Shown: positions 1,019 through 35,202 of the stretch, piece after piece | How positions within the stretch are numbered: position 1 is the first letter of the stretch | Layout: each line of letters opens with the position of its first letter | IMG/VR virus record: IMGVR_UViG_3300005253_001115 | Coordinates: 1 to 64,000 of that record | Length of the DNA stretch: 64,000 bases | Strand: one strand, 5' to 3' | Notes under the pieces: model-generated | The model's input: the letters and a program-made list of their open reading frames with translations, nothing else | Databases searched by the model: none | What the model was told of the DNA's origin: nothing | Position numbers and translations under genes: made by a program

Positions 1019-1088
1019 TAGCTGTGGCTCAGGATGAGCACTCCGGTCTTTAATCTGGAGAGGCAGGGTTCAATCCCCTGACAGTTGA
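1019..1088 (+). tRNA. tRNA-Pyl-like fold with 8-nt anticodon loop (TCTTTAAT)
   Basis: 7-bp acceptor, 1-nt linker, gctc-AGGAT-gagc D arm, 6-bp anticodon stem ctccgg/ctggag, 3-nt variable loop, caggg-TTCAATC-ccctg. Confidence 0.55.
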
Positions 1089-1090
1089 AC

Positions 1091-1105
1091 ACCGCGACAG
1101 GCGGT
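1091..1105 (+). repeat. GACAG hairpin copy 2
   Basis: accgc-GACAG-gcggt. Confidence 0.85.
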
Positions 1106-1185
1106 AACCCAGGATGACCCCGGGGAAATGAGCATAGCCTATTCGGCCCAATCTCAGGACCCCGGGAGACTCCTTTCTAGTTTAT

Positions 1186-5727: not shown

Positions 5728-5803
<76 letters not shown>

Positions 5804-6144: not shown

Positions 6145-6247
6145 GTCGAACTGGAGATGCGGGTTGGATTCCCGCCAGTTGCGCGATTGCGGACTGTAGC
6201 ATAAATGACAAGAACCGCGACAGGCGGTTCGTGAGTGCGCCGTTCAC
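6145..6247 (+). ncRNA. Y RNA (YrlA-like) circularly permuted tRNA mimic with GACAG hairpin (copy 3, 6212-6230) in the D loop
   Basis: 5' GT(C)GAAC pairs with 3' GTTCAC leaving a bulged C; order is T arm, loop-closed acceptor-like stem, D arm. Confidence 0.75.
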
Positions 6248-6254
6248 TTTACAT

Positions 6255-6321
6255 AGGGCGGGATCTGGGATCAGCAGAGCCTCCAAAACTCAGCAGCGGG
6301 GTTCGATTCCTCGTCGCCCTG
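6255..6321 (+). tRNA. tRNA-Trp(CCA), atypical with minimal D arm
   Basis: CT-CCA-AA loop, gatc-tgg-gatc D arm, canonical T arm, G73. Confidence 0.7.
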
Positions 6322-6354
6322 CGACTTTACTAAAGGAAAGAATGGAGAAGAGAC

Positions 6355-12173: not shown

Positions 12174-12754
12174 GTCTGGTACCGCACAAGTGCAGATGTG
12201 GGCAGTGTTTTCTGGAGATGCCGGAGACAGTACCACAGTCCAGAGGAGGACTGTTTGACCAACTCATGGTGCTAACTGCGGTGGCTGGGCACTTACAGCG
12301 GTCAGGAGAGCATCATTCAGCAGAGACGATTATAGAGGTGCAGGACAAGCTTTACACTGGGCTAGCGGCTGCACTACGAAAGGCAGAAAAGGGGGCGATA
12401 GCTCAGCAGGGAGAGCGCTTGAATATTCAAGAGGTCCGGGGTTCGAGCCCCCGTCGCTCCACCATTATTTCTGACTTCTTGGCGTCACTTCGTATGTACG
12501 AGTTCAACGCGATGGATTGCGGGTCCAGGCGGGTAATAAAGCTGTCCGTGGACGATATTGAGAAAGATTTCCTCGATGAGCTAAAGTTTGTGGACCAACT
12601 TCCCGAAGATGGTATCACAGGAAGAGCCCTGGAGCTTGCGGACCTTGTGTCCGATATGATCTGGGGCGGAGCTAGAGGCTGGGAACGCGCAGATCAGGAG
12701 CAGTTTGAGCACTTGAAGCGTGAAGCCGGGAAGAGAATGAAAGTAACCAACTGA
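12170..12754 (+). CDS. hypothetical protein containing an in-frame tRNA-like insert
   Basis: 194-aa ORF stays open across 12392-12464. Confidence 0.6.
   Translation: MSLVPHKCRCGQCFLEMPETVPQSRGGLFDQLMVLTAVAGHLQRSGEHHSAETIIEVQDKLYTGLAAALRKAEKGAIAQQGERLNIQEVRGSSPRRSTIISDFLASLRMYEFNAMDCGSRRVIKLSVDDIEKDFLDELKFVDQLPEDGITGRALELADLVSDMIWGGARGWERADQEQFEHLKREAGKRMKVTN
12392..12464 (+). tRNA. tRNA-Ala with the anticodon precisely deleted
   Basis: cttgaat-attcaag versus cttgaat-GGC-attcaag in tRNA-Ala(GGC); G3.U70, D/T arms and ACCA intact. Confidence 0.85.
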
Positions 12755-13100: not shown

Positions 13101-13356
13101 CGGCTTATCCTTAGGCTGTAGAAGAAGCCGCGACAGGCGGCACAGACCGCCTCCAGAGGGGCTTCGAGGAAGGGAAATCCCGACAACAAAGTCCGCCCTG
13201 GTTGCGGAACCAATGTAGCTCGGTCAGTAGGCTTCCTTTTGTGCATGTAATGTGCATGTGGTCGCGACAGGCGACCGCGGTAATAACGATATTATGACCC
13301 AACAATACCCGCCAAGCCTCTCTACGATGCTCAAACCGGCGGGTTTTTGTTTTTTC
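13101..13356 (+). ncRNA. uncharacterised multi-hairpin RNA with GACAG hairpins copies 4 and 5 and a 3' terminator
   Basis: Hairpins at 13127-13141 and 13258-13278, several further helices, acccgcc/ggcgggt plus T-run. Confidence 0.6.
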
Positions 13357-20067: not shown

Positions 20068-20159
20068 CAAAGGTCATATCCCGGTCGCCAGAGAGGCGGT
20101 ACGGGTATCGCGACAGGCGATAAGGTAGGCTAGCGTTTGTATAGCCGGGAAGTTCTTTG
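20068..20159 (+). ncRNA. uncharacterised multibranch RNA carrying GACAG hairpin copy 6 (20106-20122)
   Basis: Outer caaagg/tctttg and tcccgg/ccggga helices; inner cgcc-AGAGA-ggcg and tatcgc-GACAG-gcgata. Confidence 0.55.
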
Positions 20160-20247: not shown

Positions 20248-20262
20248 GCCGCGACAGGCGGC
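20248..20262 (+). repeat. GACAG hairpin copy 7
   Basis: gccgc-GACAG-gcggc. Confidence 0.85.
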
Positions 20263-20360: not shown

Positions 20361-20380
20361 TTTGATTACGAAAGGATAAA

Positions 20381-20652
20381 CAGACGGGCGGACAATCGCT
20401 CCAAGGAGAGGAAAGTCGGGACTGCACGGTACAGCCTAGAGGGTAACACCCTTCCACCGTGAGGTGCGTGACGGCAACAGAGACGAGCCTATTTGGTTAG
20501 GTTGAAACGGGCGACAGCGTGGGCGCAGCAACCGAAAGCAGGGGACATTGATCGTACCAGAGAGTCCCCGGGTATCGGGCAAAGATTCTAGTGGTAACAC
20601 TAGAGCAAGACGAATGATTGTCGATAACAGAATCCCGCTTATAGCCCATCTG
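20381..20652 (+). ncRNA. rnpB: RNase P RNA (compact, bacterial type)
   Basis: GAGGAAAGTCGGGAC and AACAGAATCCCGCTTA (P4), GCAACAGAGA, TGAAACGG, terminal P1 cagacgggc/gcccatctg. Confidence 0.93.
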
Positions 20653-20670
20653 CAATTTTAGGAGAAGAAC

Positions 20671-21280: not shown

Positions 21281-21326
21281 CCGGGTGTAGCGCAGTCTGG
21301 TAGCGCGCCTGCTTTGGGAGCAGGAT
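21281..21326 (+). pseudogene. 5' half of tRNA-Pro(TGG), T arm and acceptor 3' strand lost
   Basis: D arm and cctgc-TT-TGG-GA-gcagg intact, then sequence switches. Confidence 0.8.
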
Positions 21327-21419
21327 TTGGGTGGCACTACTTGCCCAGAAAACTTACAGCCTTTGTGCCTTAATTGCCATAGAGACAAAACGGTACAGGA
21401 GTCGAAAAATAGAAAATGA
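21327..21419 (+). pseudogene. C-terminal remnant of an HNH endonuclease
   Basis: LGGTTCPENLQPLCLNCHRDKTVQESKNRK-stop, no start. Confidence 0.75.
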
Positions 21420-21503: not shown

Positions 21504-21591
21504 GGACCGGTAGCAAAATTGGCTGAATGCAGCGGACTTTTAACCCGCAGGAGAAATCCCACTGTGAGTTCGAATCTCACCCGGTTCACCA
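21504..21591 (+). tRNA. tRNA-Lys(TTT) with long variable arm
   Basis: CT-TTT-AA loop; gga-GAAA-tcc extra arm; CCA. Confidence 0.8.
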
Positions 21592-24017: not shown

Positions 24018-24018
24018 C

Positions 24019-24116
24019 AATGAAGTCAGAAATCCGAGTTCGAGTCCCGGCGGGGATCTTACCGCGACAGGCGGTTGATGTTCCCTGTAGGTTAATTGGT
24101 AAACCACTGGCGCATT
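24019..24116 (+). ncRNA. second circularly permuted tRNA mimic (YrlA-like topology) with GACAG hairpin copy 8 (24061-24075) capping the acceptor-like stem
   Basis: gtcag..T arm (TTCGAGT)..cgggga/tccctg..ggtt-AATTGGTA-aacc D arm..ctggc. Confidence 0.75.
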
Positions 24117-27695: not shown

Positions 27696-28042
27696 GCAAA
27701 CCCAGTAGCAAACCTCTGGTTCGATGCACAGGGAAAGAGTGCTCCATTCACTGCCCACACAGCCTACCACATGAAAAGTGGGGCGAACTGAAGACATGTA
27801 CTCTCTGGGGAGAATGTTCAGAGAGTGAGAAAAAGATTCGTTGCGTGAAAGTGAAAGAAGGAGAACACGATGAATGACCGAAACTGTGCGGTCCGAGAGA
27901 GAATCGGAGACGGCGTTTCAGTTGGGCGCTGCTGGATTTACACAGACGAGGCTGAGGGTACTCTGACGTGCCCCAGACACGGAGATGTAACAAGTATTCA
28001 GAAGCGCTTCAGCGAGACTGGGGAGCTTGGAGAAGACCCGAG

Positions 28043-29272
28043 ATGAGTGACTACGACGTATTTCAGGGTGGCGTGCCGATCAAGGCATGGACGAAGGGCG
28101 TGCCGATTGAGTCGGCGGCTCTCGATCAGTTGAAGAATGTGGCGGCTCTGCCGTTCATTCACAAGTGGGTAGCAGTGATGCCGGACGTTCACTTCGGGCG
28201 TGGTGCTACCGTTGGCTCGGTCATTCCGACCAAGGGGGCTATCATTCCGGCGGCTGTCGGTGTGGACATTGGTTGCGGCATGGTCGCCGTGCGAACGGGA
28301 CTCGTGTCTCACGACCTTCCGACCAACTTGAAGAAGTGGCGTCTAGCTATCGAAGAGGCTGTGCCGCACGGCGCAGTCAAGGGTGCTTCCCACGATCGTG
28401 GCGGATTCTCTCCGGGCGCTCTTCCGAAGACGAACTCTCGTCTGTGGCAGAACAAGTTGGCGAATCGTTACGCTACCATTATGGGAAAGCACAAGTCGGT
28501 TGCTCACAAGGCTGGTCCACACCAGCTTGGTACGCTTGGGGGCGGTAACCACTTCATCGAGATTTGCCTGGATGAGGCGGATCGCGTGTGGCTGATGCTG
28601 CACTCGGGTAGCCGTGGCCTTGGCAACAAGATCGGAATGTACTTCACCGATCTGGCAAAGAAGGAGATGAAGATTCACTTCGTGAACTTGCCGGACAAGG
28701 ATCTTGCATATCTGCCGGAGGGTACGCAGCACTTCGATGACTACATCGAGGCGATGACGTGGGCGCAGGACTTTGCTCAGTTCAACCGCGACCTTATGGT
28801 TCTTCAGGTGTTCGATGCCTTGAAGCGCGAGGGCGGAGTTCCGCAGAAGAAGCTCTTGACTCACGATGTGGCAGTCAATTGCCATCACAATTACAGCGCT
28901 CGCGAGAACCACTACGGACAGAACGTGTGGCTCACTCGTAAGGGAGCAGTGTGCGCGCGCAAGGGCGTCATGGGAATCATCCCGGGTTCGATGGGTACCA
29001 AGTCCTTCATTGTAGAGGGCAAGGGTAACCCGGAGAGCTTTGACTCGTGCTCGCACGGGGCTGGTCGCATCATGAGCCGCTCGAAGGCAAAGAAGACGTT
29101 CACGCTGGACGACCACATCAAGGCAACGGAGGGGGTCGAGTGTCGCAAGGACGAAGGAGTCATTGATGAGACGCCGGGAGCTTATAAGGATATCGACGCT
29201 GTTATGGCAGCGCAGGCATCTTTGGTGGACATCAAGCATACGCTTCGTCAGGTGCTCTGTGTCAAGGGCTAA
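28043..29272 (+). CDS. rtcB: RtcB RNA 3'-phosphate/5'-OH ligase
   Basis: MPDVH, VGVDIGCG, GTLGGGNHF, HSGSRG, HHNY, SHGAGR and DETPGAYK motifs. Confidence 0.97.
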   Translation: MSDYDVFQGGVPIKAWTKGVPIESAALDQLKNVAALPFIHKWVAVMPDVHFGRGATVGSVIPTKGAIIPAAVGVDIGCGMVAVRTGLVSHDLPTNLKKWRLAIEEAVPHGAVKGASHDRGGFSPGALPKTNSRLWQNKLANRYATIMGKHKSVAHKAGPHQLGTLGGGNHFIEICLDEADRVWLMLHSGSRGLGNKIGMYFTDLAKKEMKIHFVNLPDKDLAYLPEGTQHFDDYIEAMTWAQDFAQFNRDLMVLQVFDALKREGGVPQKKLLTHDVAVNCHHNYSARENHYGQNVWLTRKGAVCARKGVMGIIPGSMGTKSFIVEGKGNPESFDSCSHGAGRIMSRSKAKKTFTLDDHIKATEGVECRKDEGVIDETPGAYKDIDAVMAAQASLVDIKHTLRQVLCVKG

Positions 29273-32091: not shown

Positions 32092-35000
32092 TTAGGGTCG
32101 AGGCTCCTGCTCGTACTCGATCGGCATACCAGCGGACTGGATGAGCTGCTGAACGCGGGCGAACAGGTCGTCGGCACCGTCGTGCTCGGAGGACTTGTCC
32201 AGAGCCTCCAGACGGGGCGTGATACCAAGTAGCCACTCGGGAGGACCGTCAATCACGATTCCGCCGTGACGCTCGAACCTGTGGCTCCTGAGGGCCATAA
32301 TTGCCGGACTTACTTCCTCGAAAAGGGGGCTCATGATTACGATACGCTCCCCCACGGGACCCTTAGGATCGACCGCAATAGCCATTTTCTGGTTTGGCAT
32401 TAGCGGTTGAACCTGCTTCTGTTCGACATTTGCGTCATCGTCAGCTTGGATGGGGTCGATCGGAACTTCTCGCTCGTTTCTGTGATTCACGGATGGTCCT
32501 ATTCCCGGGCGTTCCTCTTCCAGAGGAGTGCTGTATTCCTTCGGGAAGATGGCGTCGATGTCCATCAGGTCTTCCATAGTTCGCGCCGCTTCCGTGGCTG
32601 CGGGGTAAATGTTCTCTTCGGGCTCCTCGATACTCATGAAGCCAGACTTCTTGCCTGTAAAGTCCATGTCCCAGTACGGACGGATCTTGGTGCCGCCACC
32701 ACGACCGCCTCGTCCCCGCTCTCCGTGATTCATGTCATCACCGCCCGGATTTTGTCCGCCGGGTCCATGCATGTTCGTGGGGTCGAGAGTTGAAGTAGCT
32801 TTGTCTGCATCGTCGTGGTCGTCGTAGAAATCAGGGTGCTCCACAAGATGATCCTTAGTCACCTCCTTAGCTATGCCTCTATCTACACCGTGTTCCCACA
32901 CTTCAATATCTGTGCCTGTCTTTAGCGCCTCGGGGTCGAAGGCAGAATCCGGCATGCCATCAGCCCTACCGCCAGGAAGCAGCTCTTCTTGAGCGCAAGC
33001 CTTGAACATGTTGCGCTCTGGGTCCGGGTAGTTCTGTACGGGCAGGAATCCTGTCTCTTGGTCTGCACCACGAGGCTTAATCATCGGGGCACGGTCGAGA
33101 CCGCCGCCACCTGGCTTACGAACTATCTGTCCGGGGAAGCTGGAGGGAGGGGACTCTTCGGCACTTCTAGTGGGGGACGGGTGCGGAGTGGAAGTCTCGG
33201 GCATCTGTGGCAACGGAAGCTCTACAGGCAAGAAGCCCCGGTCCTTGTTGTTGGGTGTCTCGTATGCTTCAGCAGGGTCGCCTTCCCAGTCCGGGAAGAC
33301 ACCGGTTTCTGGTGTCATGCCGTTCGGGCTGGGCTCAAGCTCCTCCATTTGGTGCGGCGTAGACCCGCCGAACCCGTCACGGCCAAGAGGCCCTTCTAGG
33401 GGATGGTTCGAGAATCTAGATCCTCGATCGAAGTCCTTGACGCCGGGATACTCTTCGGCGCGCTTGTGTAGGCGCTGGGGCTCCGCCGTGGCTAGGCCCG
33501 GATGCTGGGATTCACCCTTCTTGTCAGCGGGCCACTCGTAAAGATTCCACAAGAGGAAATCATCTTGCGTCTTGTCTGGGTCTGTTCGGAATGAGCTAGG
33601 GCCTACACCTGTGCCGAATACTCCGCTCTTGGTGTTACCCTTCTTGCGCTCTTCTCTATAGTTCCCGTCGAAGCATTCTTCACCTTCGCGGATATGCGAG
33701 TCCCCACATTCATTCATGTTCTTCTCCTGAGAACCGCCCTCCTCCGAGCGGTCCTTCAAAAAACGAGTAGCCAATTCGATCAGCTTGTCCGGGTCTGTTA
33801 TTGCTGTCTCGTCCTCAATCGAACGAGTCAGAGCCAGGAACTTGCCCATATCGGGTCCGGGCTTGAAGCCCTTCGCGATTAGGTGCTTACCCGAAACAGA
33901 GTCTACCAGCTTCCCGCCTGGGGCAGCTACAGAAGTGACATGCTGGTGGTAGTCCTCAAGGAACTTGTCCTGGGAACTTACGTCCCTGCGCAGGGCTTCC
34001 TCGGTTGTTCTGCCCAACACATCAGCCTTCGACAAGGCCGCAAGCAGCTCGGGGCTAACATCGGCATCACCCAATGTGCGACCCAGCTTCCTGTAGCCTT
34101 TGCGGCCACTGGTTCCGGGAAGGATCGCCGGGCGCAAGTGGGTATCAACTAGAGTCTCAACCTGCTTAATTAGAGCCAGTGGTGCTTTCATCCTGCCCAA
34201 GAACGCGCGAGTAGGCTCGATGCCAGCCTCTTCGTGTCCACGGGAGGTAATGTACCCGTCGATCTCCTCAGTAGAGACCGGCTTTCCAAAGTCGTGTGCC
34301 AGAGCCCCAAGCATTAGGGGGAGATCGAACGCAGGATCGCCAGTGCGCTGTTTTGCAGCCTCATCGAGAACCAGCAGGGTGTGGACGTAAACGTCCCCCT
34401 CGGGGTGCCACTTAGGTTCCTGCGGAACACCCAGTAGCGCCTCGATCTCCGGGAAGTAGCGGAGCAGGTTTGCCTGATGCAGCACCTCAATTCCCTTACT
34501 CGGTTTTTGGCCCTTTAGGAGCATCTTGGAGAACTCCGGCAGGATACGCTCACCCGGGAGCTGCTCAAGCGGCTGTGCGGCCACGAGTTGAAGTGTCTGG
34601 GGGTCTACATCAAAGTCAAAACGCGCAGCGAACTGGGCCACTCTGAGGGCTCGTAACGGGTCGTCAGAGAACGTGTTGACATCTGCGGCACGCAGGATTC
34701 CTGCCTTGAGGTCAGCGACACCGTTTAAGGGGTCAATGATCTCGTCTGTTAAAGGGTCTTTCGAAAGGGCGTTGATCGTGAGATCGCGCCTGCGGGCAGC
34801 GTCTTCCACGCTCATGGTAGGATCAGGAATTACATCAAAGCCTTTGTGCCCCTCTCCGGTCTTCTTCTCGCGGCGAGGGAGTGCAACGTCCCAGTCAAGC
34901 TCTTGGATGTTCAGCACGCCGAACTGCTGTCCGACCTCTTTTACATTACCAAACCGGGAAAGGATCTCGTTGACCTTCTCCATGGGGAGACCGAAGACCT

Positions 35001-35202
35001 CGAAGTCCACGTCTTTGCTTGGGAGGCCGAGTAGCTCATCTCGCACGATGCCCCCGACGAGCAAGGCTACCCCTCCCGCGCCTTCAACAGCGCGTGCGAA
35101 TGCCTCGACCAGAGCTTTTTCATTCGGATTCACGAGAATATTCCTGTATTTCTTCCTCATCCGCATAGCGGCTATGTGTGCGAATCCTGTGGCAATTTGC
35201 AC
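32092..35202 (-). CDS. cca: CCA tRNA nucleotidyltransferase (class II + HD domain) fused to ~550-aa acidic/Pro-rich extension
   Basis: VGGIVRD, DVDFE, RRDLTINA, DDPLRALR, HPEGDV, HDFGK. Confidence 0.9.
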   Translation of the reverse strand: MQIATGFAHIAAMRMRKKYRNILVNPNEKALVEAFARAVEGAGGVALLVGGIVRDELLGLPSKDVDFEVFGLPMEKVNEILSRFGNVKEVGQQFGVLNIQELDWDVALPRREKKTGEGHKGFDVIPDPTMSVEDAARRRDLTINALSKDPLTDEIIDPLNGVADLKAGILRAADVNTFSDDPLRALRVAQFAARFDFDVDPQTLQLVAAQPLEQLPGERILPEFSKMLLKGQKPSKGIEVLHQANLLRYFPEIEALLGVPQEPKWHPEGDVYVHTLLVLDEAAKQRTGDPAFDLPLMLGALAHDFGKPVSTEEIDGYITSRGHEEAGIEPTRAFLGRMKAPLALIKQVETLVDTHLRPAILPGTSGRKGYRKLGRTLGDADVSPELLAALSKADVLGRTTEEALRRDVSSQDKFLEDYHQHVTSVAAPGGKLVDSVSGKHLIAKGFKPGPDMGKFLALTRSIEDETAITDPDKLIELATRFLKDRSEEGGSQEKNMNECGDSHIREGEECFDGNYREERKKGNTKSGVFGTGVGPSSFRTDPDKTQDDFLLWNLYEWPADKKGESQHPGLATAEPQRLHKRAEEYPGVKDFDRGSRFSNHPLEGPLGRDGFGGSTPHQMEELEPSPNGMTPETGVFPDWEGDPAEAYETPNNKDRGFLPVELPLPQMPETSTPHPSPTRSAEESPPSSFPGQIVRKPGGGGLDRAPMIKPRGADQETGFLPVQNYPDPERNMFKACAQEELLPGGRADGMPDSAFDPEALKTGTDIEVWEHGVDRGIAKEVTKDHLVEHPDFYDDHDDADKATSTLDPTNMHGPGGQNPGGDDMNHGERGRGGRGGGTKIRPYWDMDFTGKKSGFMSIEEPEENIYPAATEAARTMEDLMDIDAIFPKEYSTPLEEERPGIGPSVNHRNEREVPIDPIQADDDANVEQKQVQPLMPNQKMAIAVDPKGPVGERIVIMSPLFEEVSPAIMALRSHRFERHGGIVIDGPPEWLLGITPRLEALDKSSEHDGADDLFARVQQLIQSAGMPIEYEQEPRP

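Follow-up and report, generated by a model that had tools for sequence, protein, structure and literature searches.

What kind of RNA is encoded by a compact cloverleaf that lies within the tRNA array of a phage, carries a loop of eight nucleotides (nt) where an anticodon would be expected, and is directly followed by two further hairpins? The window analysed here is the whole stretch of 64,000 nt that forms the first 64 kb of the IMG/VR virus record IMGVR_UViG_3300005253_001115. This linear record of 266,640 bp (labelled G000) is estimated to be 89% complete and represents a tailed jumbo phage, with a terminase large subunit, a portal and virion proteins present. An earlier note on this DNA, made from the letters alone, had described a fold resembling tRNA-Pyl and had offered two explanations, an ochre or frameshift suppressor and a tRNA-like domain of a longer non-coding RNA (ncRNA). 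However tempting, the reading as a natural ochre or quadruplet suppressor is most probably wrong. The cloverleaf, termed tRNA-like B in the following, is better read as a tRNA-like domain that lies next to a longer ncRNA or forms part of it, and we give about an even chance to the view that it is a tRNA-shaped structural RNA which is selected for its shape and does not decode. The locus is composed of three parts:

1019-1088, + strand: tRNA-like B, a cloverleaf without an encoded CCA (minimum free energy (MFE) and centroid fold).
1091-1105, + strand: GACAG hairpin, the copy that belongs to this locus, with the invariant core CGC/GACAG/GCG and covarying outer pairs.
1111-1174, + strand: long hairpin, present in one copy per genome (fold, alignment A2 and RNAalifold).

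In the predicted fold of tRNA-like B, the acceptor stem is formed by 1019-1025 with 1081-1087 (7 bp including two G-U pairs) and is linked to the D arm by the single nucleotide G1026. The D arm (1027-1039) can be read in two ways, with a 5-nt loop (AGGAU) on 4 bp or a 3-nt loop on 5 bp. It is followed by a third stem of 6 bp (1041-1046 with 1055-1060) carrying the 8-nt loop UCUUUAAU at 1047-1054, which does not contain CUA. A variable loop of 3 nt (1061-1063) leads to the T arm (1064-1080), the loop of which (UUCAAUC) is of the canonical T-psi-C type, and the D-loop GG is present as well. The discriminator A1088 is followed by ACA, and CCA is not encoded. Folding confirmed the cloverleaf with the 8-nt loop that had been described before at 1019-1088, together with all of its listed structural details. 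The compact geometry (1-nt linker, 5-nt D loop, 6-bp third stem and 3-nt variable loop) can be read directly in the sequence, and both the GACAG hairpin and the long GC stem were found directly 3' of the module.

The fold has a free energy of -26.9 kcal/mol and a z-score of -2.07, and 7 of 200 shuffled sequences fold equally well. The folding energy alone is only modestly above chance; it is the conservation that lifts the observation beyond it. With the Rfam tRNA model (RF00005), tRNA-like B obtains 16.0 bits, below the gathering cut-off of 29, and ARAGORN in its default mode is silent on it. With -ps90, ARAGORN reports 1018-1090 as 'tRNA-?(Lys|Stop)(ttta)' with a 4-base anticodon, and in mitochondrial mode as Lys(ttt). 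The search for other Rfam families within 900-1300 (E <= 10) returned only noise far below threshold (CRISPR-DR32, Twister-P5 and mascRNA). A hammerhead-like core considered in a by-eye search was dropped, since its CUGANGA box is not conserved in relatives. A coding origin of the element was rejected as well: no credible open reading frame (ORF) was found in 900-1300, the frames of only 25-80 amino acids (aa) are spurious, and the indels among relatives do not come in multiples of three.

The search for homologues gave 13 loci from marine-sediment metagenomes, one of which (L102) is identical to the window. Here, G001 denotes a related phage contig of 184 kb, and L-numbers denote loci on metagenome contigs. 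G001 was reached through the CCA-adding enzyme and shows the same arrangement as G000. Six loci were retrieved from metagenome contigs with a pattern drawn from G000 and G001, and six further syntenic loci via 36 relatives (P0001-P0036) of the downstream 258-aa protein. In IMG/VR, the flanking proteins have no close relatives and the exact pattern of loop and T arm has no match; the hairpin 15-mer gave 88 matching stretches there, nearly all of them isolated hits to unrelated contigs and presumably due to chance. No match was obtained by megablast in GenBank phages. The composite pattern was also without a match among 185,579 prokaryote genomes, which therefore give no clue to a prophage or host. 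At every homologous locus the element precedes a tRNA with the anticodon UAA, the body of which differs among the loci. On contigs from other samples, the conserved part 1086-1171 is joined to different 5' modules; the tRNA-like module, where present, always lies upstream of the GACAG hairpin and the long hairpin.

Structural conservation in these relatives is evident: scaffold and hairpins are kept with covariation, and the third arm of the cloverleaf varies. Its loop has 8 nt in G000 and L103, the latter with a C-U mismatch in the third stem. By an extra U and a closing U-G pair, L106 can form either a loop of 9 nt on 6 bp or, with 7 bp, a 7-nt loop of the Lys type (CUUUUAA). In L105/L111, L117 and G001 the third arm of the cloverleaf is a stem of 8-9 bp capped by a GUA triloop, and the third arms of L124 and L122 are longer still. 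L121 and L123 have no third arm at all and form an 8-bp stem around a T-like hairpin (minihelix), and in L114 the module is decayed by many small deletions. Of 11 homologues, six have the four-way cloverleaf as their MFE structure, and in a seventh it is 1.6 kcal/mol less stable than the MFE fold. G000, L103, L106, L105, L117 and L124 share the acceptor stem, the D-arm AGGAU, a T stem of 5-6 bp and a 7-nt T loop of the UUCRAUY type, with the exception of the L106 loop (UCCAAUC); G001 departs in both the D-arm AGGAU and the T loop. None of the homologous modules is matched by the Rfam tRNA model at E <= 1. The modules were compared by per-sequence folds and by the pair G000-L106, the MAFFT alignment A3 being out of structural register in the acceptor.

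Within this pair, tRNA-like B is 85.9% identical and the neighbouring tRNA-Leu 88.2%, while the neighbouring gene has a protein identity of 77.7% with 57.8% of third codon positions identical. Ten differences are located in the module, six of them in stems, and all six keep pairing; they comprise A-U to G-U, G-U to A-U, C-G to U-G and G-U to G-C changes and a full U-A to C-G exchange. Since the identity of the module is far above that of synonymous sites and every stem change keeps pairing, the cloverleaf is under purifying selection in the G000-L106 lineage. The acceptor/T-arm minihelix and the elbow made by D-loop GG and T loop are the features recognised by RNase P, RNase Z, CCA-adding enzymes and T-loop modifiers. 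That the module keeps these features for processing enzymes while its third arm is free to vary argues that it does not decode.

In the long hairpin, an outer stem is followed by an 8-bp GC stem (1118-1125 with 1160-1167). Beyond a 3x3 internal loop comes a stem of 4 bp (1129-1132 with 1153-1156), with the invariant GAGCA and CAAUCUC at its flanks, and the apex is variable. In the alignment of 12 sequences, 97.9% of the cells of the 16 pairs are paired and five pairs show double (compensatory) changes. The observed covariation score was reached by none of 500 shuffles, and sliding the partners by 1-3 columns drops the pairing to 22-52%. With a covariance model built on both hairpins (R1), a single full copy was detected in each of G000 and G001. 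Judged from these alignments, both hairpins together form a new conserved structured RNA motif, absent from Rfam. At L122 (1310-1930), as an observation apart, the long hairpin has an apex enlarged by ~50 nt, and an HNH endonuclease gene separates this hairpin from the tRNA(UAA), with the called ORF running into that tRNA.

The core of the GACAG hairpin is unchanged in all 12 aligned loci, and the pairs of its outer stem covary (C-G, U-A, A-U, and beyond). In G000 the 11-nt core occurs seven times on the + strand and twice on the - strand, with 0.09 occurrences expected per strand. All copies are oriented with the local genes, and most of them are situated in longer spacers adjoining tRNAs. 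The following were located by motif scan:

57-69, + strand: near-copy with the loop GACAU, between a truncated tRNA and tRNA-Phe.
6215-6227, + strand: copy 72 nt past tRNA-Arg.
13128-13140, + strand: copy 33 nt past tRNA-Met.
13262-13274, + strand: copy with the outer pair U-A, upstream of an abiF RNA motif.
20108-20120, + strand: copy between tRNA-Asn and tRNA-Ser.
20249-20261, + strand: copy between tRNA-Ser and tRNA-Pro.
24062-24074, + strand: copy 45 nt past tRNA-Ser.

The motif is also found in more distant relatives that are without the long hairpin (L115, L119), and at the homologous loci the hairpin marks the junction where the 5' modules of the relatives differ. Repetition, fixed orientation, covarying outer pairs and presence in distant relatives point to a putative sequence-specific RNA signal; a signal acting as an oriented single strand would be the other candidate.

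The element belongs to an array in which ARAGORN finds 33 tRNAs, all on the + strand and within the first 24 kb, often only 4-10 nt apart. tRNA-like B starts 4 nt past another unusual module, tRNA-like A, and is in register with this array. Most canonical tRNAs of the array encode CCA. The record itself starts inside a tRNA (1-45, + strand), of which the T arm, the 3' strand of the acceptor and CCA can be recognised ahead of the first GACAG-type hairpin, so that the array probably extends beyond the start of the record. Neither a sigma-70-like promoter nor an intrinsic terminator was found in 900-1300. Neighbouring features and those concerned with RNA processing are given below:

945-1014, + strand: tRNA-like A, a non-canonical tRNA of low score (Rfam tRNA, 34.1 bits in a small search); anticodon loop of 7 nt (UUG), T loop of 6 nt, CCA not encoded.
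1175-1185, + strand: pyrimidine-rich spacer that ends in UAU, leader of tRNA-Leu (from the sequence; a similar pyrimidine-rich tail is seen in relatives).
1186-1269, + strand: tRNA-Leu(UAA) with encoded CCA (ARAGORN; Rfam, 50.9 bits).
1284-2060, + strand: amidinotransferase/dimethylargininase-like gene of 258 aa, after tRNA-Leu (weak DDAH and ADI Pfam matches).
13308-13344, + strand: abiF RNA motif (RF03085, 59 bits).
20380-20657, + strand: RNase P RNA, class A, reduced (Rfam RF00010, 149.4 bits, E = 4e-46).
27968-29272, + strand: RtcB RNA ligase, near the CCA-adding enzyme.
32092-35202, - strand: CCA-adding enzyme of 1036 aa, whose first ~370 aa contain the PolyA_pol head together with RNA-binding and HD domains.
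162371-162647 of G001, - strand: RNase P RNA of G001 (L133), 147.8 bits.

The RNase P RNA of G000 comprises 278 nt, compared to 367 positions of the model, and is located inside the tRNA array. A gene for RnpA was not found on the G000 contig, and among the papers listed by a literature search with jumbo-phage terms, none contained the phrase 'RNase P RNA'. It is likely that this RNA serves as processing enzyme for the array and the tRNA-like modules. RtcB and the CCA-adding enzyme constitute a tRNA repair kit; ~650 further residues without a Pfam match are fused to the latter. Two side observations concern the surroundings. The amidinotransferase-like gene, an unusual auxiliary gene for a phage, is kept alongside a cupin protein in every related phage contig. 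The abiF RNA motif has a GACAG hairpin copy upstream and a U-rich, terminator-like stretch downstream (13262-13344).

For the complete stretch 1019-1174, a composite non-coding unit within a polycistronic tRNA operon, with the tRNA mimic as processing handle, is a reading that in our estimate has an evenly balanced chance of being correct. The operon would be transcribed as one precursor. RNase P with its phage-encoded RNA subunit would cut at the 5' start of both the tRNA-like module and tRNA-Leu(UAA), and 3'-end enzymes would cut after the discriminator of the mimic. The predicted products are a small tRNA-like RNA and an RNA of ~97 nt (1089-1185) with the GACAG hairpin first, followed by the long hairpin. 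The mimic would act as a processing handle or punctuation mark and possibly as a ligand for tRNA-binding proteins, and the GACAG hairpin may be a sequence-specific signal for protein recognition or end protection that is reused throughout the array. Such tRNA-type punctuation is, we infer, the most economical mechanism for the unit. Of the earlier idea of a tRNA-like domain within a longer ncRNA, structural selection and the constant position ahead of the conserved hairpins are borne out, while the single transcript is a prediction.

Several points weigh against this reading. The conservation is based on few independent sequences. Moreover, 6 of the 12 aligned loci were retrieved by a pattern containing GAAAUGAGC and CAAUCUCAGGAC, which are part of the long hairpin, so that the invariance of those motifs is partly given by construction; the loci retrieved via the protein (L114, L117, L121, L123, L124) also keep GAGCA and CAAUCUC. 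tRNA-like B is dispensable in some lineages, as seen from the decayed module of L114 and the minihelices of L121 and L123. A processing handle alone leaves the Lys-like loop of G000 and L106 unexplained. Finally, all sequencing runs with G000 sequence are DNA runs, and none is an RNA run; they come from marine-sediment metagenomes of two studies, and metagenomes from other studies contain only small shares of G000 sequence.

tRNA-like B is not the only unusual tRNA in this phage. The upstream tRNA-like A is detected by ARAGORN in mitochondrial mode only. Its body is kept in G001, L105, L114, L117, L124 and L122 with the anticodon arm exchanged, giving the anticodons UUG (G000, L105, L114, L117), UUU (G001), UAG (L124) and UAU (L122). 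These arm swaps show full stem compensation and well-formed 7-nt loops, and tRNA-like A has either switched its identity or is another non-decoding scaffold. Homologues of it are listed at L005, L105, L114, L117, L124 and L122. An Ala-like tRNA at 12392-12464 (+ strand, 54 bits) encodes CCA and has a 4-nt anticodon loop on a palindromic stem, reported by ARAGORN as 'tRNA-??? (ta)'; set beside tRNA-Ala(GGC) (5728-5803), it appears to have lost the anticodon itself by deletion. A tRNA-Lys(UUU) at 21504-21591 (+ strand) has 88 nt and a long extra arm, unusual for a Lys tRNA, and is accompanied by several Ser tRNAs and by a 29-bit tRNA-like sequence without CCA at 21281-21349. Further tRNA-like candidates at 6250-6330 and 24018-24061 gave no convincing fold and were rejected.

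The first alternative to a processing handle, attractive as it is, has in our view a low probability and lies in tRNA-centred phage-host conflict: the module could be a decoy or ligand, either an inhibitor of or competing substrate for host anticodon nucleases or a cofactor for phage tRNA repair, and an arms race would diversify the third arm. A conserved scaffold with a hypervariable third arm would be in accordance with this, as would the same pattern in tRNA-like A, where UUG, UUU, UAG and UAU arms are swapped, and the occurrence of a CCA-bearing Ala-like tRNA with a loop reduced to 4 nt in the same phage. The presence of RtcB and of the CCA/repair enzyme is suggestive of conflicts that involve tRNA cleavage (an overview of the phage tRNA repair kit is given in PMC7824862). 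Escape from anticodon nucleases, or their neutralisation, is known for phage tRNAs whose anticodon loop is altered (PMC10264068, PMC11464382, PMC11555353). However, these published cases are functional tRNAs with 7-nt loops and not loop-less mimics, and some relatives have lost the module or carry it in decayed form. The support for a decoy is entirely circumstantial.

A still smaller probability is assigned to a working, non-canonical tRNA in G000, L103 and L106, which would be a tRNA-Lys(UUU), an ochre suppressor (UUA) or a quadruplet +1 suppressor (UUUA reading UAAA) that receives its CCA from the phage enzyme and is charged by a host synthetase. It is the reading suggested by ARAGORN, both in the relaxed mode with ttta '(Lys|Stop)' and in mitochondrial mode with Lys(ttt), and by the arm of L106, which can be folded as a Lys(UUU) loop (CUUUUAA) on a 7-bp stem. 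The module has A73 as discriminator, a GG in the D loop and a canonical T loop, the purifying selection is similar to that on the neighbouring tRNA-Leu, and with a phage CCA-adding enzyme the missing CCA is not fatal. On the other hand, a 7-nt anticodon loop with U33, a purine at position 37 and a conserved anticodon is not found in tRNA-like B. Between the closest distinct homologues the loop measures 8 versus 9 nt, the remaining homologues are without an anticodon loop, and the stem of L103 contains the C-U mismatch. The 1-nt linker, the stem of 6-7 bp and the score of 16 bits are outside the range of normal elongator tRNAs, and the array already holds tRNA-Lys(UUU) and tRNA-Lys(CUU).

The genome, too, speaks against a decoder of UAA. 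The standard code (code 11) fits, with stop-to-stop frames of at least 150 aa covering 85% of the genome. TAA is the commonest stop and ends 98 of 234 long ORFs (42%), 22 of these being TAA followed by A. In a coarse scan, hypothetical read-through of each stop gave the smallest gain in coverage for TAA among the three stops, and a coarse genome scan for recoding sites (in-frame stops, +1 sites, a recoded stop) revealed none that were evident. A PylRS-like gene elsewhere in the genome was looked for: there was no match to TIGR02367 (PylS) on the 266.6-kb contig at E <= 0.01, the contig being 89% complete and a host enzyme possible. The ochre or frameshift suppressor put forward in the earlier note is not supported, as the length of the loop differs even between the closest distinct homologues and the loop is missing from the rest; signs of recoding, an encoded CCA and PylS are likewise absent. 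There is only a slim chance that the Lys-type loop of G000, L103 and L106 is active, be it as a nuclease-resistant surrogate or decoy of tRNA-Lys or as a low-level decoder of UAA or of the quadruplet UAAA. If this were true, tRNA-like B, tRNA-like A and the anticodon-less Ala-like tRNA would make up a family of 'designer' mimics serviced by the phage RNase P RNA.

Least probable of all is a decaying tRNA pseudogene at 1019-1088 next to two unrelated intergenic signals (transcript boundaries or recombination joints, PeSL-like), because the failure of default tRNA detectors, the many small deletions in L114, the swapping of 5' modules exactly at the repeated hairpin and the presence of this hairpin beside many array spacers are set against an identity of 86% where synonymous sites have 57%, six of six stem substitutions that keep pairing, and a cloverleaf and elbow retained in divergent variants, which is not expected of neutral sequence.

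Phage tRNA arrays are now seen as a means of counter-defence as well as of codon supply. To this picture, a clade of uncultured jumbo phages from marine sediment would add tRNA mimics that are selected for their shape without a selected anticodon. The same clade adds a repeated hairpin that may punctuate the array, a hairpin RNA that is absent from Rfam, and a phage-encoded RNase P RNA. If the idea of a handle or of a decoy proves true, these phages would offer a concrete system in which to study the maturation and protection of translation RNAs by the large phages that encode them.

A comparison with known systems starts from tRNA-Pyl, which has the anticodon CUA in a 7-nt loop and a compact core without the D-loop GG and a canonical T loop. 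Mammalian mitochondrial tRNA-Ser(UCN) is similarly compact. tRNA-like B shares with both the 1-nt linker, the 5-nt D loop, the 6-bp third stem and the 3-nt variable loop. Unlike tRNA-Pyl, it has an 8-nt loop without CUA, possesses the D-loop GG and a canonical T loop, has A as discriminator, does not conserve the loop among relatives and occurs on a contig without PylS. Hence, the likeness to tRNA-Pyl noted before holds for four geometric features and fails for the anticodon, the D-loop GG and the T loop. Frameshift suppressors of the sufD/sufJ type are otherwise canonical tRNAs in which an insertion of 1 nt in a known isoacceptor results in an 8-nt anticodon loop. The 8-nt loop of tRNA-like B can likewise be read as a 4-base anticodon (ttta in ARAGORN), whereas its body is non-canonical, its loop length varies in homologues and no recoding sites are evident. 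Such tRNAs are reviewed in PMC5009743.

YrlA (RF02553) combines a tRNA-like domain with a long protein-binding stem, is linked to RNA repair of the RtcB type and occurs also in phages (PMC4201824). In YrlA, however, the 5' and 3' ends form a stem that encloses the tRNA-like domain, whereas the parts are arranged in series here. No match to RF02553 was found in 900-1300, and no Ro/TROVE protein (PF05731) on the contig. As to tmRNA, ARAGORN -m finds none on the contig, and there is no Rfam tmRNA match in 900-1300. For the GACAG hairpin, boxB offers itself for comparison, the protein-binding pentaloop hairpin of lambdoid phages with a GNRA-like loop. A second candidate are the PeSL cassettes of T4-type phages, which are repeated intergenic stem-loops with an attached promoter (PMC2839356, PMC4122927). 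Like PeSL and boxB, the GACAG hairpin is a short, repeated intergenic stem-loop, co-oriented with transcription and located at the borders of variable modules. It differs from PeSL, as no promoter-like part was found beside it, and from boxB, as its loop is not GNRA-like; it has no U tract either.

A tRNA-like processing handle is exemplified by mascRNA (Rfam RF01684) at the 3' end of MALAT1. The tRNA cluster of T4 contains stable, cotranscribed non-tRNA species, the species 1 and 2 RNAs, for which a literature search gave no confirmation. With mascRNA, tRNA-like B would share a cloverleaf without a decoding anticodon in a longer predicted transcript, where processing enzymes would set the ends of the neighbouring RNA. 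There is no match to mascRNA in sequence or model (13 bits, T arm only), and processing is a prediction here. As a putative parallel to the T4 species 1 and 2 RNAs, the hairpin part would be a non-tRNA RNA in a phage tRNA operon. The element fits none of the compared known families. A tRNA mimic in a phage tRNA operon is of a known kind, and what is new is the adjacent conserved RNA motif. In its mode, the unit would by analogy be closest to the tRNA-like processing handles of the mascRNA type and to the stable non-tRNA RNAs of the T4 cluster.

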